Part shown: positions 3,001 through 37,900 of the stretch, piece after piece
Numbering within the stretch: the first letter of the stretch is position 1
Layout: the number at the start of each line of letters is the position of its first letter
Source of the DNA: Sminthopsis crassicaudata
Taxonomy: Eukaryota
DNA: 64,000 bases
Direction of reading: 5' to 3'
Assembly (NCBI RefSeq): GCF_048593235.1
Contig: NC_133618.1
Span: 59,864,478-59,928,477 of the forward strand
Notes under the pieces: generated by a model
Told to the model about the DNA's origin: nothing
Database searches by the model: none
What the model saw: only the letters and a program-made list of their open reading frames with translations
Program-made: the position numbers and the translations under genes

Positions 3001-6000
3001 TTTGAGACAAGAGCCAAGGACGTGATGTCCAACAAGGTACCTCCCTGAGCGCGGGGACGTAACAGCCACACGGCCTGGGCAGAGCCACCCCCTGGTCAGG
3101 GCCCATGCCCAGTTACCAGCCAAGGGAAGTGGCACGACACGGGTCACACAGAGTCTGGCAGAGCCCGGACTAAAGCCCAGGCCTTCAGACACAGAGCCAG
3201 CTTTCTTCCCCCGGCACAGCCTTGTTTCTGGGCCCTCGGGTTTACCAGGGCAAGGAATGCCCCTCAGCCCCCGTGCCAGGGCTGGCTCCCACCCCCGCCC
3301 TGCATGACCCTTACAGAAAGCTGCTGAAGGCCGAAGGACGATGACCACGGTGCTGGACCCCAAACGCAGCAACGCCATCAACATCGGCCTGACGACGCTG
3401 CCCCCCGTCCACGTCATCAAAGCCGCCCTGCTGGGCTTCGATGAGTTTGCTGTCAGCAAGGATGGCATCGAGGTGAGTTGGGGTGGTTGGGGGGGCTGTG
3501 AAGGGCAGAAGCGCCCCTCCATCCTAGCTCCCGACTTGTACCAGCAAAGCCCCCTTTCCTCTTAAATCAGCAGCGAAACTTGCATTAGGAAGCACAGCCT
3601 CGGGACTAATAGAGATTCACAGAACTGTACTTCAGCCCCCTAATGAATGGTTCCTGAACTGAATTTCTCAGGTCTGGGAGGAACCCCAGAGTCAGGAACC
3701 CCCTGAGGCCGTCCCTCGGGCCTGCTGGCGGGCACCTAGAGCTCCATGCACACTCGGAGCCTTCTCGTCTGTACAAGGGCTGGAAAACCAGCCCGAACGG
3801 CTCATTTCTGTACCCCCAGATGATCTCCTCCTGACTTCTGGGGGTCTCTGAAAACTACAAGAGAGGACCCCCCAGCGGGGTGGAGGTTCTCCCCTTCCTG
3901 TGTTCCGGTTTTTAGACCGAAAAGTGGCCACCCTGCTCCCCTCCGGGCTCCCTCCACAGCCCTCCTCCTCTCCCCTTTTTGTTCCAGCTTTATCTTCCTT
4001 CCTGTGTCTGTGTGGCATCCCTGCTCCAGGGTGACAGCGGTGACACCTGAATTAGGCAGGCCCCCCTAGCCTCAGGGTGTGCCCGTGCTTCCCTGGGCCT
4101 CCTGGGCTGAGGGAGTGTTTTCTCAGCCGCAGGCCTGGGGCCGGGAAGACCTCGTTCCCATGGCCTCCAGGGGCCCCTTCCTCACGGAGCTCCCTGGGAC
4201 AGGGGACCCAGCCCTTGCTCTGACCCCCTCTCCCCCACACACCTGGTGCTCCTGCACAGTCACTTCCCTTGGGGATTCTCTTCCTGCCCAATGAGACGCT
4301 CCCAGCCCTCTGGCTCCTCTGAGCCCCTCCCCTGAGGCTGCGCTCTGGGCGAGTCCCCTCAGCCCGGCCGAGCCGACTGTTGACAGGCTAGTGGACGTTT
4401 GAAGTCTGCCTGCTCCTCCTGCTCGGGCTGGGGTGTCTGCCTTCCCTGTGTGACCCCAAGTTGGCCAGACCAACCGCGGGCCTTTCCGTTGCCTCTGGGG
4501 GTCCTTAACTCTTTGGAGGTGGGGCTCTTCTTACAGTCCTACAACAGCCTGTGGTGGAAAGAGCCGCTCTCAGGCCCGGACTTCTTCCGGGCCCTCCGCG
4601 CTCCGTTTCTGGGGCCGGCTCTCGGGCCGTCAGCGTTCCGGCCCTCGCACACTCCTCGGCACCCGGCGGCTCTCCCCCGGAGAGTTCGCCCGAGGCACAT
4701 TTAAGCTGCATTTCAGGGTTACAAAGTGCGTTTCTGACTGACCTGTGAGGCAGGGGCGCAGGGGTAGCAGTAGTTTTAGGAACCGTGGAGGACGAGCCCA
4801 CTGTGCACACCTTGCGTTTTCCCGGCAGGGAAACCGAGGCTTAGAGGAAGGGCTGGAGCTCAGACCCATTCCTAGGACACGTGCTTAGGACCCTTTAATC
4901 AGCTCTCGGGGTGGGCGAGTGGGCCGCCCGGACCTCAGTTTCTTCATCCACAGAATGGGAGGGCGGGGTGGTTGTCCCTTCCGCTCCAGCGGTCTGTGAC
5001 GGCTCGGGCTGTCTGGAGGTCTCCGAGATCCCCCGCCCACCGGAGGGCCGAAGTCCAGAAGCTGACACGTTAATCGCCCCCCCCCCCCCCGGGATTTTCC
5101 AGGCTCCTACGGGAATAAATAAGGGGGTGTCAGCACACCCCTCCCCTCCCCCCGGAAACTGGGGGGCGCCCGAGCGCACAGACAGCGGGGGCTGCGTGTC
5201 TCCACAGAAACTGCTGACCATGGTGCCCACGGAGGAGGAGCGGCAGAAGATCCAGGAGGCCCAGGCGGCCAATCCGGACGTGCCCCTGGGCCCGGCCGAG
5301 AGCTTCCTGCTGACCCTCGCCTCGGTCGGCGGCCTGGCGGCCCGGCTGCAGCTGTGGGCCTTCAAGCTGGATTACGAGACCATGGAGCGGGTACGCGGAG
5401 CCGTGGGAATGGGCCCGCGGGGGAGGGCCACGGGAGGGCGCCTCCTACTGGTGTTTGGAGGCAAGAGGAGCCAGATGGGCAGAGGACCGATTCTTTGCAG
5501 AAAGTTGTCGGTAAAAGCGCTGCTTTAGTGGCACTTTTGGGGAGCTGGGGCAGCCGCTTCAGTGGGGTAACCTGGACTCCCTCCCCCGCCCACAGGAGAT
5601 TGCGGAGCCCCTGTTTGACCTGAAGCTGGGGATGCAACAACTGGTCCAGAACCCCACGTTCCGCTGCATCCTGGCCACCCTCCTGGCCGTGGGCAACTTC
5701 CTCAACAACTCCCAGGTGAGTGGGCCCGGAAAGGGGCTTCCTGCCCCCACCTCAGTGTCCCCCCCCAAGGGCCCCATGGGGGGGGGGGAGGCGCCGAGCG
5801 CGGCAGGCTGAGCAGGTGACCTTGCAGAGCAGCGGATTTGAGCTGAGTTACCTGGAGAAGGTGTCCGAGGTGAAGGACACAGTGCGCAGGCAGTCCCTGC
5901 TCTACCATCTCTGCACCCTGGTGCTCCAGAGCCAGCCCGAGTCCTCCGACCTCTACTCGGAGATCCCAGCCCTCACCCGGTGTGCCAAGGTCAGTGGGGG

Positions 6001-26973: not shown

Positions 26974-29900
26974 CAATAATAACTGCATAGGCCAGCAAAA
27001 TGAATTCCGACATTAGTCATATCCAAAAATCTATGTCTCTTTCTGCATTTTAAGTTCGTTACTTTTCTGTCAGGAGATGAATAGTCAGGAAGAGATTTCA
27101 TCATCTTTCTTGATGACATGTGGCGGCTTCTCATTGTGTTAATCTAGTTCTAAAGTCTTTCAGGATTGTTTTTCTCTATAAAATTATCATCATAAAAATT
27201 GTTCTCCTAGTTCTCTTTAGTTTGTTCAGTATCTATACATGTAGGTTGTCCCAGTTTTTTCTGAAACTGCCCATTTTATCATTTATTTATACCATCTATT
27301 ATTATAGAATAATAACATTCTATTATATTCATATATCACAAATTGTTTAGCCATTCCCCATTAGGACAACCTCTTAATTTCTCATTTTTGACTATAGTGA
27401 AAAGAGCTGCTATAAATGTTGTGTGTGTGTTTGAATTCTTTTCCTCTTTCTTTGATTAGGTATAAGCTCAATAGTGGCATAACTGGGTCAAAGGTAAGCA
27501 CAGTTTGATGACTAACTTTCTGGGCATCTTTCCAAAATGCTTTTCAGAGTGACTGGGCCAATTTACAGCTCCACCAACAGTACCTTAATCTGTTTGCTTT
27601 TCTACAGCCCTTCCAACATTTTTTACTTTCTTCTTTTATCATCTTTGGGTATCATTGATGGGTGTGAAGTAGAACCTCAAAATTGCATTAGTTTGTATTT
27701 CTCTCACTTTTAGAGATTCAAGAATAAAGCATTTTTTTCCATGTGATTGTTGATAGCTTCAATTTCTTCCTTTGGAAAATCCAGTTTGTCTACTTTGACC
27801 AGTTATCTAATAGGGAATAGTTCTTATAAACTTGAATCAGTTCTTTATATATATTATAAATAAAACATTTATCAAAAAAATTGCTAAAGATTTTTTCCTA
27901 GTTACTTTTTCCCTTCCAATTTTACTACTTTAAATTAATCTATACAAAATTTCTTAAATTTTCTACAACCCAAACTCCATTTTCTATCATTTGTTTATTT
28001 ATGAACTCTTTATCTATAAATCCAGAAGGTAATTTCTTTCTTACTCTTCTAATTTGTTTATGATGAGACCTTTATATTTAGTGCCTGTGCCCATTTGAAA
28101 TTTGTCTTAGAATATGGCGAAAGGTATTGATTTACACCTAGTTACTCCAGACTGTAACTAGTTTTCCTAGAAGTTTTTATCAAATAGTTCTTAACATCAG
28201 GGTCGGTGGATTTATCAGAGACTATTTTATTGCCTTTGTTGGCTTATTGATGATATGTACCTAATATATTCCATTGATTGACTTATCATTTTCAAAGCCA
28301 GTTCCAAATTGTTTTTAATAATTGTTGCTTTATGTATATTTGAGATCTAGTATTGATAAGATCTTTTCTTACTACTTATTTTTTCACTATTATTCCTGAA
28401 ATTTGTATTATTTTTCTAGGTCTTTAAAAAAGACCTAGCATAGTAACAAATAAGTAAATTGATTCAGGGAATATTGTCATTTTATTATATTGGTTTGAAC
28501 TACCCATGAGCAAAGAATATTTCTCCAATTATTTATTTCAATCTTTATTTCTGAGATAATTGGCTATTACAAATTTAACAAAAACAAAACCTATAATACT
28601 CTTCTGAATTTTTTGAGGTGCCATTCCAAGGAATTTTTTTGATCATCAAATAAACATTTATTAAACATTAAACATTAACTGTGCAGAAAGCTGTGCTAGA
28701 TTAATTAAAATACTAATAATTCACATTTTTATAGTTTTACTAAACAAGTCTGACAGAAGTAGTATAAGAAATGCCCCCTCTCCTATCCTCATTCCAATTC
28801 CTTACTAAATTGGATAGTTTTTCAATTTCCTGAAGACACTATCTCCCACAGTTCTCTTCTCTTCTAGGTAGCCTCTCCATAGCACCATGCTTGCTGCCAA
28901 GTTCTGCTGCCCTGGCTTCTTTGGAACCTTACTACTCTAGCTTCCTCCAAGAAGTATATGCCCTTCCTCCTTCCCTACAGTGACCTCTGTACTCCTAAGC
29001 AATGGACTGAGAAGCCAAGAATGTCTGTAGAGATATTCTGACCATCGGCTCAGGACCCCATTAGCCACTAAAATGGGTGTTCTGTGGGATTGATAAGTGC
29101 CAGCTTCGAGGTGCCCAAAGGAGACTGCCTTACTTAACCCCAACTGCCTCCCCCCCAATATAGATGATACTTTCTTGCCATTTTTCTCAGTATCTCCTGC
29201 CTAAGACATCTTGAAACTTTTCATTTATTTGTAATAAAGGGTTAGATGCTTTATGGCTCCAAGTCTTCTGGGTTTGAGGAGCTAGATTTATTGTCAGGGC
29301 CTCCATCTAAAACAGCTGGAATCTTTAGCAGTTGCTCATCCATTCCTCCTGCTAGAGACACTTGGCTACCCTTGGGTTTGGGGGCTGCCACTGGGGACTT
29401 GAGTTTCCTCTGGTGATTTCTGCCTGGCATCCTACCTACCCTAACCTCTCTTTATCTCAACACCAGTCCCTATGTGGCCCAGAACTGACTGGTAAGCCAC
29501 ATCCCCCTCCCCATTTTTAGGTTCTAAGCTATCTCTCTGTAGGTGTCAGGATCTCTCACTCAGTGCCACATTCCTGGTGTCTCAGGTTTCTTGACTTACC
29601 CTCTGTAGCTGCCCTTTTAGTACCCCTCTCTCCCGGGTCCCACTCTGAGGCAGGCCTTCTCCATACTTTCATCCTTAGTCCCTGCCTTTATTCTTTGGCC
29701 CTCACTTATCCCTGGATGTTCCATTCCTCACAGCTGCCCACAAGTGTGAGGCTAAGGTTAAGTAAGTGATGGGGCCCTTTATGTGTTCCCTCAGATAGAT
29801 GTTCGGTATAACATCCCTGTGACAGCTGCCTCCCTCAGCTCCATCAAGAGCCTAAGCCGCAGGCACGTCTCCTGTGTGAGCCTTATCAACGTGGATGGTT

Positions 29901-32900
29901 CTTCAGATGCCAACAGCGTGCTGCAGTCCATATCCTATTACTTGGGCCCGCACCTACAAAGCCTATCTCTGGGTGGGGGCTCCTTGACAGAAGCTTCTTT
30001 TGTAAGGCTCATCATAAGCTGCCCTGGGCTCCAGGTCTTGGACCTCAGTGGCTGCAATAGCCTCTTCATGTCCGGGAAGCTGCTGGACCAACCGGAAACA
30101 GTCCAACAGGTGCAGAAGGCCCTGGCCAACCTCCGGGATCTCAACCTATCTAGCCTACGCCATTTGGCAGACAGCAGCTTCAACCGCCTAAGCAGCTGCA
30201 CCCCAAAACTGGAGCGCCTCTCCCTGGCACGTTGCCACATCACCTTTGACCCTCACCGCAGTCAGTCAGGCCAACCAGGCTCTTCGGCCATCCTTTCCTT
30301 CCCCAACATACTCCACTTCCTGAAGGAGCGAGCCAGTTATCTGGTGGCCCTGGACCTAAGCGGCACAAATCTGACCCCCGCAGCTCTCCATGCACTGGGA
30401 CAGGTGGTGGGACTTCACCTGCAGGAGCTGGTCCTGCGAGGCTGCCGGGACATCTCCACTGAGGCCGTGGGAGGCCTTTGCCGGCAGCAGCGGGGCCTGA
30501 CCAGCCTGGACCTGAGTGGCTGCTCTGAGCTGGCTGACGGGGCCCTTCTGGTTGTGTCCAGGGGCTTAAAGGGCCTGCAGCATCTGCGCCTGGAGAAGCT
30601 GCAGCAGCTGACAGACTCTGGCTTCTCCTCCTTGCACTGGCTGCGGGAACTGAGAAGCCTCGACCTGGGCGAGTGCTGCCGCGTGAGTGGAAGGGAGTTG
30701 GCCAAGGCACTGGAGTTCCCCAGGGGGCCCCCACCCCACCTCACATCTCTCAGGCTAGCCTACTGCTCCTTGCTGAAGGTAAGTGAGCCTCTCCTGGCCT
30801 TCCCTGCTTTCTGGAGGTTCCAGGAGACCAAGTAGGACTTCAGAGAGCTTCCTCTTGAGTTCAGTGACCAAGGCCAACTGCTGAGGGTTTCTGGTCCAGC
30901 ACCACAAGCAAAATCCTCGAGTTTTCTGGTTTTTTCCCCCTATTATGTTAATGCTGGTATCTTTTCTCTGTTGATGATGTCTAATTTATACTATTTCTCT
31001 TTTTTCTTCATAGCTTTTTTTAAAGTATCTTTTCTCTGTTGATGAGCTCTAATTTATATTTCTCTTTCTTCTTCCTTCATATTTCTCTTTTTTTTCCTAG
31101 TATCTTTTCTCTGTTGATGATCTCTAATTTATATTATTTCTCTTTCTTCCTTTATAGCTTTTTTTTGTCTGTTTGTTTTTTCAGAGGCAATTGGGATTAA
31201 ATGACTTGTCCAGGGTCACACAACTAGGAAGTGTTTTAAGTGTCTCAGACTGAATTTGAACTGAGGTCCTCCTGACTTCAGGGCAGGTGCTTTATCCACT
31301 GCACCATCTAACTGCCCCTTGGGTTTTCTGTATTAGTTAAATCAAATGTAGATGAACTTCAACTCCATGAAGAGTTGACTCTTAGGATAATTAGCCCCCT
31401 TCCTCCACAGAAGTCTTCCCCCTTGTTATGCTGCTGCTGTGACACAGAGCCCTAAAAGTAGATGCCAGTGGATGGCCCTTCAGAGGGCTAGCCTCCGTGC
31501 CCCGATCCCAACTACAGTGGTTATGATAGTAACCACACACATGCTCAAATCTTGTTAAGGTCTACAAAGTCCTTTCTTTCCCAGTGTCTGTGAGGGAGGT
31601 GCAAACACTCTTATCCTCATATTGCAGATCAGAAAATTTGTCTCAGAAAGGTGAGATGAAGCTCATCCATGGTCACACAGCTAGTAAGTGATGGATCCAG
31701 ATCTGGTTTTTCTCTGAAGTTCTGCTTGTTGAGATAAAAGAAAGTAGATCAAGGCCTTGGTAATCCTTAAAACCCTTTCTCTGTACATGCTACTTAGATT
31801 TATGACACCAGGTCCCAGCTGTCAGAAACCTACAGTCAGCTTGGGAAGCTAGGATAGAGCTATATAAAAAGGCCCAGAGCTTTATCAAGGATTTGAAATC
31901 TCACATGACCTCTGCCTCTAGGATTCTCTATAGGGGCTCTTCCTGGCCCCAGCCAGCATCCCACGTGCTCTCCTATACCTTCCCTTTCCTTTCCAGGATG
32001 CTTCTGTCATCTCCTTGGCCCAGGGGCTCGGCTCCAGCCTGAAGGTGCTCGACCTGTCATCCTGCATGTCCCTCACCAACAGCAGCCTGCTGGCCATCTC
32101 TGCCAACCTGCCCCAACTCACTGTCCTGCGGCTGGCATGGTGTAAGGAAATCACTGACTCGGGGCTCCTGGGGCTGGCAGATCCAGGCGAGGAGGTGAGG
32201 AGGGTGAGCTGGGAGAGGGGGCAGTGGGAAGTACAACTGGGAAAGTCTAAAGGGAAGGGCCGCAGCCTCTCCTTTTCCAGGATTGGCTTGGCTCTTTTTG
32301 TCCAAGACCTCAGTCTGTACAAAACAGTATGGAGTAGTGAGGAGCGCTCAGAAGACTCCAAAGGGCTCCTCATTCCTAACTGTACAGCCTTAAGCAAAGA
32401 ACTGCTTATTTCAGAGCCTCAGTTTTCTCATTTGTAAAATGGGGATTAAATCTGTTCTCCTTGCCTCCCTGGATTGCTGTCAGGAAAGTGCTTTCTAAAC
32501 TTTCAATCCCTCAAGAAATAGGAGCTATCCAGATGGTTCTGGTCCAACTCCATCCAAGTAGGAGGCCCCTAGCTGGACCTTCCCCACCTAGTCCCCCCAA
32601 CATGAATAGGTACATCCTGCAGCCTCAGCAGCCTTCTAACTATCTCCCCACCCCTTCCCCTTGGCTCTTTTCGCCAGAAGGACAAAGGGACGAAGTTAAA
32701 CAAGAACTTTGGAGACATGGGCTTCTTCCTCCCACAGTTGCCTCCAGAGCCCTTGGCCCACCTCGAGACCCCCTCCCAAGAGACTCCCAACAAGCAGTTC
32801 ACACCCTCCCTGCTCCTGCTGAGGGCTTTGCAGGAGCTTGACCTCACTGCCTGCAGCAAGCTGACAGACAACAGCCTGGCCAAGGTGCAGGGCACATGAG

Positions 32901-33835
32901 GGCAGCACTGGGGAGGAAATGGGAATGGGGATGGTCAAGGGGTAGGGAGCATGAGGGGAACACTGGGGAGAGGAGGGCTGGCTCTCCTGAACAGGGATCC
33001 TGGGTTACTGCAGAAGAGAGGGTTAGGACAAGGACAGAATGAAGGGGTGGAAGGAGCCTTAGGGATGGTCTAAGCCCCTACTGCTCAGAAAACTAACCCA
33101 AAACAAAGAGAAGTGACTTGTCTGGGGGCTCTGGGTCAGACCCCTTGGATTCCCATCCCCCTCGAGCAGTAACTCTGACTCTTCGTCCTCTTCTGTGAAA
33201 TGAGTCCGATAAGATGATCTCTCGGACCCTTTTTAGGCCCCCCTCCTCCCTTCCCCTCCAGACCCCACCACAGAGGACCAATTGAGCCTTCAGGCCAGAA
33301 GGGGCCTCAGTCCAGGCCACTGGCCTGGGACCCCTGGACGAGCCCGGCTGCCCTCTCCGCAGGTGCTGAAGTTTCCCAGACTGAGGCAGCTCTCCCTGAG
33401 CCTGCTCCTGGAGTTCTCGGACGTGGGGCTGGTGGCAGTGGCCCAAGGCTGCCCCGGCCTGGAGCATCTGGCCCTGAGTCACTGTGGCCGCCTGAGTGAC
33501 AGGGGCTGGGCCCGGGCAGCCAGCTTCTGGAGGAGGCTCCAGCACCTCAACCTCTCCAACTGCAACCAGCTCACGGAGCAGTGAGTCACCTCAGGGCCAG
33601 GGGCACACAGGGCTCCGGACACAGGGGTGCGGGTGAGAGTGCGGCACTGACTCCGGCCCCCCACAGGACTCTGGCCACCATCCGAGAGGCCTGCCAGCAG
33701 CTGAAGGTGCTGGATGTGTCCATGTGCCAGGGCATCAGCATGGCCGCTGTGGAGCACTTCCAAGCCCAGCTGCCCCAGGTGACCTGCGTTCAGTCCCGTT
33801 TTGTGGGGGGGGCCGACCTGGCCATGACCCTCTGA
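11370..33835 (+). CDS. LRRC29: Leucine-rich repeat-containing protein 29 (F-box/LRR protein FBXL9), complete, 633 aa
   Basis: Seven exons: 11370-11393 (MAASLPPE, gccATGG), 24259-24360 ([35 protein letters not shown]-box-like), 29795-30778 (cysteine-containing LRRs, e.g. [23 protein letters not shown]), 31997-32194, 32678-32884, 33363-33580, 33667-33835 (…[18 protein letters not shown]). 1902 nt, all GT-AG and in phase. Confidence 0.93.
12744..12873 (+). mobile_element. L2 LINE 3' tail fragment
   Basis: attagattgtaaattccttgagagcag…agcctggcacacaataggcacataataaatgtttatt, the typical L2 3' end. Family assigned by recognition. Confidence 0.65.
13123..13184. repeat. (GT)31 microsatellite
   Basis: Perfect dinucleotide run. 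Confidence 0.97.
14935..15025 (-). mobile_element. RTE-tailed marsupial SINE (MAR1-like) 3' fragment
   Basis: gttgttcagtc…ttttcttggcagaaatactgg…ctatttccttctcc, the reverse complement of the RTE/BovB-like tail. Confidence 0.55.
16131..16310 (-). mobile_element. RTE-tailed marsupial SINE (MAR1-like)
   Basis: ttgttgttcagtccggtctgactc…ggcagaaatactggagtgatttgccatt…tttatagatgagaaac (RTE tail plus CORE domain). Confidence 0.6.
16345..16818 (-). mobile_element. RTE LINE / WALLSI-like 5' region fragment
   Basis: The minus strand reads ggaccaatgacatcaagggg…tgaattggatttaaatgagggagag…, which I recognise as a marsupial RTE-derived element. Not verified by search. Confidence 0.5.
16819..16848. repeat. 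(CA)15 microsatellite
   Basis: Perfect dinucleotide run. Confidence 0.95.
16960..17730 (+). mobile_element. Old L2 LINE remnant (3' ORF2/UTR); its tail resumes near 17990-18060
   Basis: Pyrimidine-rich L2-like text (atcacctcacacctgggctgttacc…, ccttttgtaacc…), interrupted by a SINE at 17733. Confidence 0.6.
17733..17950 (+). mobile_element. MAR1-like CORE-SINE with RTE-derived tail
   Basis: gggtagctaggtggtaca head, ggagtcaggaagac…agttcagatc B-box region, ctcatctgtaaaatgagctg CORE, then a tactccagtatttttgccaagaaa…gaatcagacatgattgaa tail. Confidence 0.7.
18176..19484 (-). mobile_element. 5'-truncated L1 retrotransposon (ORF2 C-terminus, 3' UTR, poly-A) with target-site duplication
   Basis: ORF track 19127-19573 (KLKSFCT…WENIF…[13 protein letters not shown]…[14 protein letters not shown]) and 18610-19197 ([19 protein letters not shown]…[18 protein letters not shown] zinc knuckle) are one ORF2 with a single frameshift near 19175. 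Poly-T on + at about 18178-18196. Exact 14-bp direct repeat taggacttgtaatt at 18162-18175 and 19485-19498. Confidence 0.95.
20150..20355 (+). mobile_element. MAR1-like SINE (CORE plus RTE tail)
   Basis: cccagtttcctcatttgtaaaatgagctggagaaagaaatggcaaac…atagggtcacaaagaattgtatacaactgaaatgactgaacaac. Confidence 0.65.
20499..20783 (+). mobile_element. Short L1 3'-UTR insertion with poly-A and target-site duplication
   Basis: Homologous to the reverse complement of 18180-18540 (gcctgccatct…ggggagggg…aagggataatgtt…aaattacc(c/t)atgcatatgta). A-rich tail. 14-bp direct repeat aaaagaaaagtcta at 20485-20498 and 20784-20797. Confidence 0.9.
22560..23830 (-). mobile_element. Old L2 remnant with a nested L1 3'-UTR fragment (+, about 23285-23560)
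   Basis: Purine-rich antisense L2-like text (gtcattagatttag…ttggtaactttggagaaagcagtttcagtg) flanks an L1-type 3' UTR (gcacaatatgacaaatatggaaatgtg…gaatgttgaaaactatcttta). Boundaries approximate. Confidence 0.55.
26744..26893 (+). mobile_element. WSINE1-like tRNA-derived SINE with A-rich tail
   Basis: ggggcagctagtggcatagtggatagag (A box), gagttcaaat (B box), cacttaacacttcctagctgtgtgacc…cttaaccccagttgcctcagc, then an A tail running into (GA)n. Confidence 0.9.
26894..26969. repeat. (GA)n microsatellite, about 38 units, grown from the SINE tail
   Basis: Perfect dinucleotide run directly after the A-rich SINE tail. Confidence 0.95.
27030..28560 (-). mobile_element. Old, degraded L1 (ORF2 3' end and 3' UTR)
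   Basis: tgtttagccattcccc…gctgctataaat…ctgggtcaaagg…tttacagctccaccaacagt…cagcccttccaaca, the same L1 motifs as at 18750-19080 but without an open frame. A related fragment lies near 24520-25130. Confidence 0.65.
30957..31166. repeat. Imperfect tandem triplication (68-75 bp period)
   Basis: gtatcttttctctgttgatga…tctaatttata…tttctct begins at 30957, 31025 and 31100. Confidence 0.85.
31159..31318 (-). mobile_element. WSINE1-like SINE (antisense)
   Basis: Reverse complement reads ggggcagttagatggtgcagtggataaagcacctgccctgaagtcaggaggacctcagttcaaatt…cttaaaacacttcctagttgtgtgaccctgg…ttgcctctga, then an A-rich tail. Confidence 0.88.
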
Positions 33836-34968: not shown

Positions 34969-37900
34969 TCAAGGCTCAGCGATGCTGCAGTCATAGCAGA
35001 AGTTGTAGTTGGTGGGCGGGGGCGGCACAGGGGGAGGCTGGTCGGGGATGGGCACATTCTCCAGTTCCAGCAGGCGGAGCTTGGTCTCCATGGCCAGCAG
35101 CAGCTCCAGCTCCATCCGCGTCTGCTCGCTGCTCATGCTCCCTCCCAGCAGGGCGCTCAGCCCGTCGGTCCACAGGCAGAACTAGGAGTGGGCCACAGGG
35201 ATTTGTCCTCTGTTGCTCGAGAGCCAGCCCTCAGCCCTCCCAGCCCGCCCCGGGCCTCCCCCCACTCACCTCCCGCTTAGAGGGGGCGATGAAGTTGAGA
35301 TAGGCCTCTTCCTCCCCAGCATCGTAGCTGACAGAGAAGGCGAGTTCACAGACGTCCTGAAGGGAAGAGGGCTCCCATGAGGGCAGAGGGAGAGGGGGCC
35401 CGGAGGGGCTAGCCCCAGGATGGACCCACCATTCTCCTGCTGCTCTAAGGCACCCAAGGGCTTCACTCTCGGCAGCCCAGGAGACCAGCAGGGCGAGCAG
35501 TGTCTCCATTCTATAAATGAGAAAACTGAGGTGGAGGCTGTGAACTTGCGGGGTTTCCCTGTGCCCAGGGCCACCTCTCTGGTGACAGCCCACAATTCTG
35601 GAGCAGATCATAGCCCTCCCCCTTGCCCCAGCTAGAAGGAAAGGGGCCAGCGGAGCTGGGGGTCCCGCAAAGCAGCAAAAGCCAGGCTGCCCTGGCCCAT
35701 CCTCACCTTATTTTGTTTCCCGGAGCCTTTCTCCCGAACATGGGGACAGTCCTTCCCCAGCAGTAGGGCCCTCATCTCAGCCACAGGGACTGTGTGGAGG
35801 GAGAGTCAGGGACAGTTACCACGGGTCACCCTGCAAGGGGAAGGGGAGGCTGGGGAGGGCTGGGGGCCAGAGCTGCTCGGGATCCCAACCCCAAGTGGCA
35901 GTCCCATGGGGATCCCTCCTGCGGGGTCTCGGGGCCCTCATACGCTTGTCAGGCAGGTTCTCTGGAGAAGGGTGGGCTGCTCCTTCTTCCACATCCCCAT
36001 ACTGCAGCATCTTGTGGTTAGGGGACAAACAGCAGAACCAGACCTTGTCTGCAGGGACAGAGGGAAGGAGAGGTGGATGAGGAAGCTAAGCTGAGACCCC
36101 TCCCCTCCTGTACTGACCCCCAGTTTACACACACTGACCTTGGCGACGGCGGCTACTGATCTTACGGAAAAGCGTCCCCTCACACAGCCGAAGCAGCCGC
36201 TGCTGACGGATCAGCTCCAAGAGCTCCGGCTTCAGCCTTTCCCGAAGCTCCCTGTGGGCAGGCAAGGCACGGAGCTGACAAAGGGGATGAGGGGCAGGGA
36301 GCTGGCAGCCCACAGGGCAGGGTTCCTAACCTGGGATCCACAGGAACCCCCAAGAATTTGTGGGGAGACTTCAGGGCATCTGTGAGCGTGGAAGGAAACA
36401 AAATATACCTTTGTTTTTATTAAAGATTGAGCCTTTCCTTCAATTATTTAAACATGATTCTGAGAAGGGATCCCTAGGTTTTTCCGGACTGCAGCCAGGG
36501 TGTCCATGACACCAAAAAGTCAGGACAAGGGGTTGCTGGAGACACATCAGACTGTGGCCCTGCCAGCAGGAGGCCAAAGGCCTGAGTCTGAAACTTGGGC
36601 CCCATCCCGGCAGCAGTGACTCCAGATATTCGTCTTCTCTGCTAAAACAGGATCCTAGTCTGCCTGCTCTCCTCCCAGAACTTGGAAAGTGCTTGCAAAT
36701 CTTAACATGAGAAGGCTTGGGTTCAAATTCTGACTCTACGACTATCTCGGAGGTGGAAACTACCATTTAGGTGCCATCCCAGGTCCAGCCTCAGTGGCTG
36801 TGGGACCTCTCATCCTAACTACCCAAAGGAGTTCCCACATCTACAGGCCCCAGAGGTGGTACACGGTGACGTCCCTTCTGAGCCCCACGAGCTCTTGCTG
36901 GCAGGGATGGGCCTCTCAGACAGGGACTGGAGTGGGGGCAGAGTCTGAGAGGGGGAGGCTCCGGGCACTGCTTGCCCCCCACTCCTTCCCCAGGGGCTCA
37001 CAGAATGGGTCTGGCCATGGTGCCCTCCTGATGCATCCTCTCCGTCTGCCGGAGCCTCAGCACCTCGCTGTAGCTGAGGGTGTTCACCTTGGTCCTGAAC
37101 AGCTCTAGAGAGGTCGGCTTCAAGGCCAGGGTTCGAGTCAGTTGTTCCCGAACCACCTGCATTACCTGGGAACGAAGATCCCTCGGTGTCCACACGTCCC
37201 CCTGCTTCCAAACAACCCCTCCCCCCCAGCCCCAGCCCGCAGGTTTCCTCCCTCACTTTGTCAAAGTCCTCCTGCGTGGCCCGCATCTCCTTCCACGTCT
37301 TGTTGAGCAACTGGATGCAGACACAGAAGAGCTCCTGGAAGCTGTTGTCTTGCCCAAAGAACATTGGGGAGAAGTCCTGGGCGGTCTCAGAGCCTCAGAG
37401 GAGGCGAAGGAGGGAGAGGGGCTCAGTAAGACCACTGAAGCAGCTCCCAGCTCTCCCACCCCACCAGTTCTTCCGGGGGTGCCTATAGGGCCCTTGGCTA
37501 ACACTGCCCAAGGCCAGGGCTGGCCCAGAGCCCCTTCCTGTGCCCCAGAGGGTCGGATGTGCCCTTGGCCACTAAGATAAGCTGCACTGGGACCGTTCTG
37601 CCCACCATCTCCCCCTGTCCTGTGGGCAACGCAAACCAGGAAAAGGGGGGTGCTGACTCACAGGGCTCCCCGATGTGCAACAGCTCGCACAGCAGCAGAG
37701 TGAGCTGGATGCTGCTCCGGGCAAAGGGACACTCGTGTTTGTCCTCTCGGCTGCTATTCTCCAGCACGAACTGGTGGGGCCGGCCGGAGAAGGAGGGGGG
37801 TCAGCCTCATCCAGGGAGGGGGCAGAGGGGACACGAGGCAAAGCCAGATAAAGAGAAGGGGGTGGGGCGGGGGTGGGGGAGAAGGAGAGCTCTGCAGGAC

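Follow-up and report, generated by a model that had tools for sequence, protein, structure and literature searches.

A splice-signal region of marsupial ELMO3 as the probable positional counterpart of the eutherian mir-328 locus, without a mir-328 hairpin

The microRNA miR-328 is placed within an intron of ELMO3 in the two published statements that we found, one of which locates the human microRNA on the opposite strand of an intron numbered 12 there (PMC3023715). A marsupial ELMO3 locus, contained in the 64-kb stretch of DNA analysed here (referred to as the window), raises the question of what occupies the same site in a different mammalian lineage. In a preliminary description, positions 37394-37474 of the plus strand had been put forward as a 'proto-miR-328', described as antisense to the ELMO3 intron-13 branch point and its pyrimidine tract, as resembling the microRNA precursor and as folding weakly. 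The reading that we favour, with a probability of about 0.8, is that this stretch is an ordinary ELMO3 splice-signal region which, by position, is orthologous to the mir-328 locus of eutherians but has no mir-328 hairpin. The intron is orthologous and the strand and the adjacency to the splice site agree; the fold is not significant and the arms are not conserved between two marsupials.

The coordinates and letters of the preliminary description are correct on direct reading, and its assignment of the locus to ELMO3 on the minus strand is confirmed by protein matches and a tblastn exon map. Gene identity was queried with a single 45-residue exon, for which the best full-length matches carry the name ELMO3. 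In a tblastn search of the window, cow ELMO3 (P0188) matches exons spanning 43834 to 34972 on the minus strand, with 89.6% identity between the exon downstream of the intron (37257..37393) and cow residues 422-469. 'Intron 13', the name used in the preliminary description, is a fair label because the upstream exon (37662..37770) is the 13th coding segment by tblastn segment count in rat; PMC3023715 numbers the intron 12. The features at the locus are the following:

29783..33581, plus strand: LRRC29-like leucine-rich-repeat coding pieces (Pfam LRR_4, LRR_6 and LRR_Zer-1 matches on plus-strand open reading frames)
37257..37393, minus strand: ELMO3 coding exon downstream of the intron, 137 nt, ending ...EDFDK (from its translation)
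37394..37661, minus strand: ELMO3 intron, 268 nt, GT..AG, boundaries set by conserved flanking codons
37394..37415, minus strand: pyrimidine tract and AG acceptor of the intron (tccctccttcgcctcctctgag on the minus strand, then the exon); the tract is kept in the second marsupial
37416..37426, minus strand: 11-mer CTGAGCCCCTC, identical in cow and rat, which holds the likely branch-point motif CTRAG
37447..37468, plus strand: position equivalent to miR-328-3p
37661 (start), minus strand: intron donor gtgagt, read from the minus strand
37662..37770, minus strand: ELMO3 coding exon upstream of the intron, 109 nt, 36 residues (minus-strand reading and tblastn with cow ELMO3 P0188)

The reported stretch makes up the final 81 nt of this intron, read antisense on the plus strand. 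On the ELMO3 strand, the intron runs from GT to AG, the reading frame continues across its exons, and the acceptor is preceded by a pyrimidine tract and a branch-point-like motif. The 268-nt length of the intron is not divisible by three. The next intron of the gene (37172-37256), which separates exons 37257-37393 and 37002-37171, is G-rich and, at 85 nt, very short.

As placental references we used the ELMO3 loci of cow (L001) and rat (L002), in which the precursors were located by Rfam; the human precursor was not used. In both species a mir-328 match above the gathering threshold (RF00772) lies antisense to ELMO3, at L001:5712-5786 in cow (103 bits) and L002:5627-5701 in rat (101 bits). The exons on either side of the intron that bears it, one ending ...GEP and the other starting SETAQDF, are those found in the window as well, so that the placement of placental mir-328 antisense in the same ELMO3 intron, which the preliminary description had given, holds for cow and rat. 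This placental intron is 108 nt long in both species and consists of 32 nt, the reverse complement of the 75-nt precursor, and 1 nt; the last is the G of the AG, and the exon (GCTCCGA...) comes next. Placental mir-328 thus abuts the exon starting GCTC(C/T)GA, in the same intron and on the same strand. The end of the precursor is separated from the 3' splice site by 1 nt, and its G-rich 5' arm is consequently the reverse complement of the intron's branch point and pyrimidine tract. This correspondence, claimed in the preliminary description, holds in cow and rat. The C-rich 3' arm is the antisense of a G-rich intronic stretch, and in cow the predicted basal stem extends into the exon antisense. 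The two precursors have the same 11-mer, a spacer of equal length and an invariant 3' arm (the 22-mer is identical between both). As a side observation, the placental intron (L001:5680-5787 in cow, L002:5595-5702 in rat) is open in the ELMO3 frame and is traversed by the open-reading-frame fragments P0291, P0304 and P0313; its retention would therefore add 36 in-frame residues.

The comparison set comprised the window, cow, rat, a second marsupial (L003), a sauropsid (L006) and a teleost (L004). L003, labelled by its marsupial-type exon signature, was the one further marsupial-type contig found in searches with open-reading-frame fragments; L006 and L004 were labelled by exon identity to named proteins. 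A further contig (L005, monotreme or other) ends before the 3' end of the intron. The intron is 268 nt long in the window, 279 nt in L003, 207 nt in the sauropsid, 105 nt in the teleost and 108 nt in cow and rat.

On the minus strand of the window, the branch-point-like TCTTACTGAG is followed by a C/T-rich tract of about 25 nt, AG and the exon, and the stretch would serve there as the branch-point/pyrimidine-tract end of intron 13. On the plus strand, the same DNA reads GAGGGGCTCAG at 37416-37426, followed by a 14-nt spacer and cagctcccagctctcccacccc. In each of the four therians (cow, rat, the window and L003), CTRAG is found at 25-34 nt upstream of the AG, preceded by TCTTA in both marsupials, and the element common to the four is CTRAGC followed by the tract. 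This conservation supports the earlier view, which we infer as well, that a putative branch point is what maintains the 11-mer. The distance from the 11-mer to the splice site is 22 nt in the window versus 17 nt in the placentals. The window contains two copies of GAGGGGCTCAG versus 0.17 expected, the other being at 4319-4329 on the minus strand.

How much of mir-328 can be recognized in the window beyond this element? In an ungapped comparison, offset by +5 nt relative to the splice site, the plus strand is identical to the cow precursor at 40/75 positions and to the rat precursor at 41/75. Dinucleotide shuffles reach a mean of 27 (sd 3), none of 2000 being as good as the window, and block shuffles that keep the purine-rich/C-rich layout (10-30-nt blocks) give p values of 0.0003-0.003. 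Among the 278 sites in the window that consist of a pyrimidine tract and AG, the true acceptor ranks first, the next best reaching 37-38; the possibility, raised in the preliminary description, that shuffled intron ends might match equally well is not borne out. The match counts given there (11/11 for the 11-mer, 15/22 for the segment after the 14-nt spacer and 13/22 for the 3p-equivalent position) are reproduced against the cow and rat precursors. Divided by segment, the 11-mer (11/11) stands out against the null, the remaining 5' side (7/16) and the loop (6-7/17) are at null level, the 3' side (16/31) is in the top 10% of the null, and the 3p-equivalent position (13/22, with a different seed) is in the top 5% of the pseudo-acceptor null. 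The 11-mer GAGGGGCTCAG accounts for almost the whole excess in identity, and the 3p-equivalent arm is marginal. No match to the miR-328-3p 22-mer with up to three mismatches is found anywhere in the 64-kb window, and when the cow and rat precursors are aligned locally and freely to the window, the site does not come out on top (22-23 versus a maximum of 29-36). Identification by sequence likeness alone was rejected, as the top free alignment lies elsewhere in the window; since the site is not first, the likeness counts only alongside positional orthology. It is real but thin, and only intron orthology makes it convincing. Neither the sauropsid nor the teleost intron resembles the precursors (p 0.3-0.56). 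With respect to mir-328, the site in the window has the position, antisense in the same ELMO3 intron and against the 3' splice site, and neither the seed nor the mature sequence.

With RNAfold, the plus strand of 37394-37474 has a minimum free energy (MFE) of -27.9 kcal/mol (z -0.29; 73/200 shuffles as good), in keeping with the weak fold noted in the preliminary description, and the minus strand of the stretch has an MFE of -33.3 kcal/mol (z -0.54). The precursors reach -49.9 kcal/mol (z -3.87) in cow and -46.1 kcal/mol (z -2.91) in rat, and the antisense of L003 reaches -25.7 kcal/mol (z -0.88). The pairing that had been drawn by eye is retained in its two 4-nt bulges and differs slightly in its helices, for which RNAfold gives 6+5+5 bp. 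In the register of the Rfam mir-328 model, 24/24 pairs can form in both cow and rat, 15/24 in the window and 11/24 in L003. The 15 pairs exceed the 8.2+-2.2 found in shuffles (p 0.003), and 14/24 are attained by the unrelated introns of the sauropsid and the teleost, when placed at their best offset. A stem of 15/24 pairs with a fold equal to that of shuffles is not a mir-328 hairpin, and the 'proto' hairpin of the preliminary description is not supported. Since the 15/24 pairs and the 13/22 identity are somewhat above a simple null, some ancestral complementarity may nevertheless be present in the stretch.

Rfam searches detected no gathering-level match (70 bits for mir-328, RF00772) in the whole window, nor in L003, L004 or L006. 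On the 111-nt stretch around the site there is no plus-strand mir-328 match at E<=10, and the sole mir-328 match, of 13 bits, falls on the minus strand, which is the wrong one. The other weak matches on the stretch (mir-483 at 20.9 bits, mir-657, mir-185 and others) were rejected as far below thresholds and as reflecting G-run/C-run composition.

A neighbouring stretch, 36919-36995 on the plus strand, was also considered and rejected. It is located in the ELMO3 intron that follows exon 37002-37171, immediately within the 5' end, forms a G-run/C-run fold-back of -40.5 kcal/mol with ends that resemble those of pre-miR-328, and has weak Rfam matches to mirtron-type families (mir-1224 at 22 bits). 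As a mir-328 orthologue it is in the wrong intron, two introns downstream of the one that bears mir-328; as a hairpin it falls short of significance (z -0.11 and +0.22), and its equivalent in L003 has no fold (z +0.7 and +0.8). By eye it is about three-quarters identical between the window and L003, seemingly better kept than the mir-328 intron. Separately, the open-reading-frame fragment P0052 occurs on 96 contigs, metagenomes included, and could derive from human DNA.

Comparison of the two marsupials bears on whether anything other than the splice signal has been retained. Their introns align end to end, with 58% identity in the last 81 nt and 56% elsewhere, and the sole block conserved between them is the branch/tract block AGTGGTCTTACTGAGCCCCTCTCCCTCC (24/28). 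The 11-mer of L003 is CTAAGCTCTTC (8/11), within TCTTACTAAG, and a 13-nt indel is found in the stretch equivalent to the C-rich arm and miR-328-3p; the C-rich arm itself is absent. This lack of conservation of the C-rich arm and of the exact 11-mer does not support the preliminary description. The marsupial counterparts of both arms would amount to composition plus one conserved 11-mer.

Could the stretch be transitional, a weak plus-strand hairpin that is transcribed, for example by read-through from the leucine-rich-repeat (LRR) gene, and occasionally processed, and so represent the ancestral therian state whose stem was later improved in eutherians? The positional orthology with placental mir-328, the surplus of register pairs over shuffles, the equal 14-nt spacer and the 13/22 identity at the 3p position all fit this explanation. 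So does the LRR gene that the preliminary description had placed upstream of the stretch on the plus strand, which the Pfam matches at 29783-33581 bear out; in cow and rat, too, ELMO3 is followed by this convergent F-box/LRR gene. (In rat, a tRNA-like Rfam match of 34.5 bits is located between Elmo3 and the LRR gene, at L002:8089-8156, and could be a tRNA-derived repeat.) However, the fold is no better than that of shuffles, unrelated introns come within one register pair, and the C-rich arm is not conserved in L003. Drosha substrates need a stem of roughly 35 bp, and that of the window, broken by the two bulges, is far below this. The term 'proto' is not earned, because the marsupial fold is indistinguishable from those of shuffled or unrelated intron ends, and we regard the explanation as unlikely. 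Because the marsupial arms pair poorly, no Drosha/Dicer substrate is expected, and the plus strand of the stretch is probably not processed. The fuller version of the transitional state, in which the complement of the tract, being purine-rich, folds back on the C-rich segment within an LRR read-through transcript and is processed at a low level, seems to us quite improbable; if true, it would mean that splice signals can seed the birth of antisense microRNAs, with the bases shared afterwards.

Secondary loss is another explanation, according to which mir-328 was present in the therian ancestor and decayed in marsupials, leaving the 11-mer and the weak likeness of the arms as remains. It would account for the ungapped identity of 40-41/75 with its rank of 1/278 and for the larger number of register pairs in the window than in L003, but there is no hairpin in either marsupial and nothing in the sauropsid and teleost introns, and the marsupial introns (268 and 279 nt) resemble the sauropsid intron (207 nt) rather than the placental one. 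Curated miRNA catalogues date Mir-328 to Eutheria. As a single gain requires fewer events than gain followed by loss, we consider loss to be quite unlikely. Least credible of all is a distinct marsupial small RNA from either strand, for example a hairpin resembling a tailed mirtron and formed by the ELMO3 sense strand, in which the G-runs would pair with the pyrimidine tract. The sense strand does fold at the -33.3 kcal/mol given above and has weak minus-strand Rfam matches to GC-rich miRNA families (mir-483 among them), but the z score of that fold is only -0.54, the matches are far below thresholds (E 0.05-9 on just 111 nt), and the G-rich arm is not conserved in L003; we hold this to be highly unlikely.

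An ordinary splice-signal region without a hairpin thus remains our preferred reading of 37394-37474. The simplest account is that eutherians gained both the hairpin and the compact intron of 108 nt, since neither is seen in the two marsupials, the sauropsid or the teleost; this is a parsimony argument drawn from these four introns, none of them from a monotreme.

For the window itself, the outcome is negative: an ordinary intron end rather than a microRNA. Its significance concerns the placental locus, where the DNA of mir-328 is doubly constrained, by splicing on one strand and by miRNA biogenesis on the other, and for which the hairpin-less marsupial, sauropsid and teleost introns can serve as an outgroup to date when the hairpin arose and when the intron contracted from about 270 to 108 nt. 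In the literature searched, we found no statement that the 5' arm of miR-328 is the complement of the host branch point and tract, and no description of the marsupial state of the site.

Among known systems, the closest on the ELMO3 strand is the ordinary vertebrate 3' splice-site region, from which the stretch does not differ; its sequence is exactly that. With eutherian mir-328 (RF00772) it shares the gene, the intron, the strand relative to ELMO3 and the position with respect to the 3' splice site. Both also have the 11-mer GAGGGGCTCAG and the 14-nt spacer. In contrast to the eutherian locus, the stretch has no significant hairpin, no covariance-model match on the right strand and no conserved seed or mature sequence, and its intron is 268 nt rather than 108 nt long. 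A broader comparison is with the de novo birth of intronic miRNAs, which emerge frequently in therians, more than 88% of intronic miRNAs being located on their host's sense strand (Meunier et al. 2013, PMC3530682). The mir-328 site agrees with this process in being a lineage-restricted miRNA whose outgroup site is plain intron, and differs in the antisense orientation of mir-328 and in its overlap with the host's branch point and pyrimidine tract. This orientation precludes the use of ELMO3 transcription by mir-328, whose 5' arm has bases in common with the splice signal. As a case of de novo miRNA origin the site is modest and testable, and unusual only in its antisense orientation to the host.
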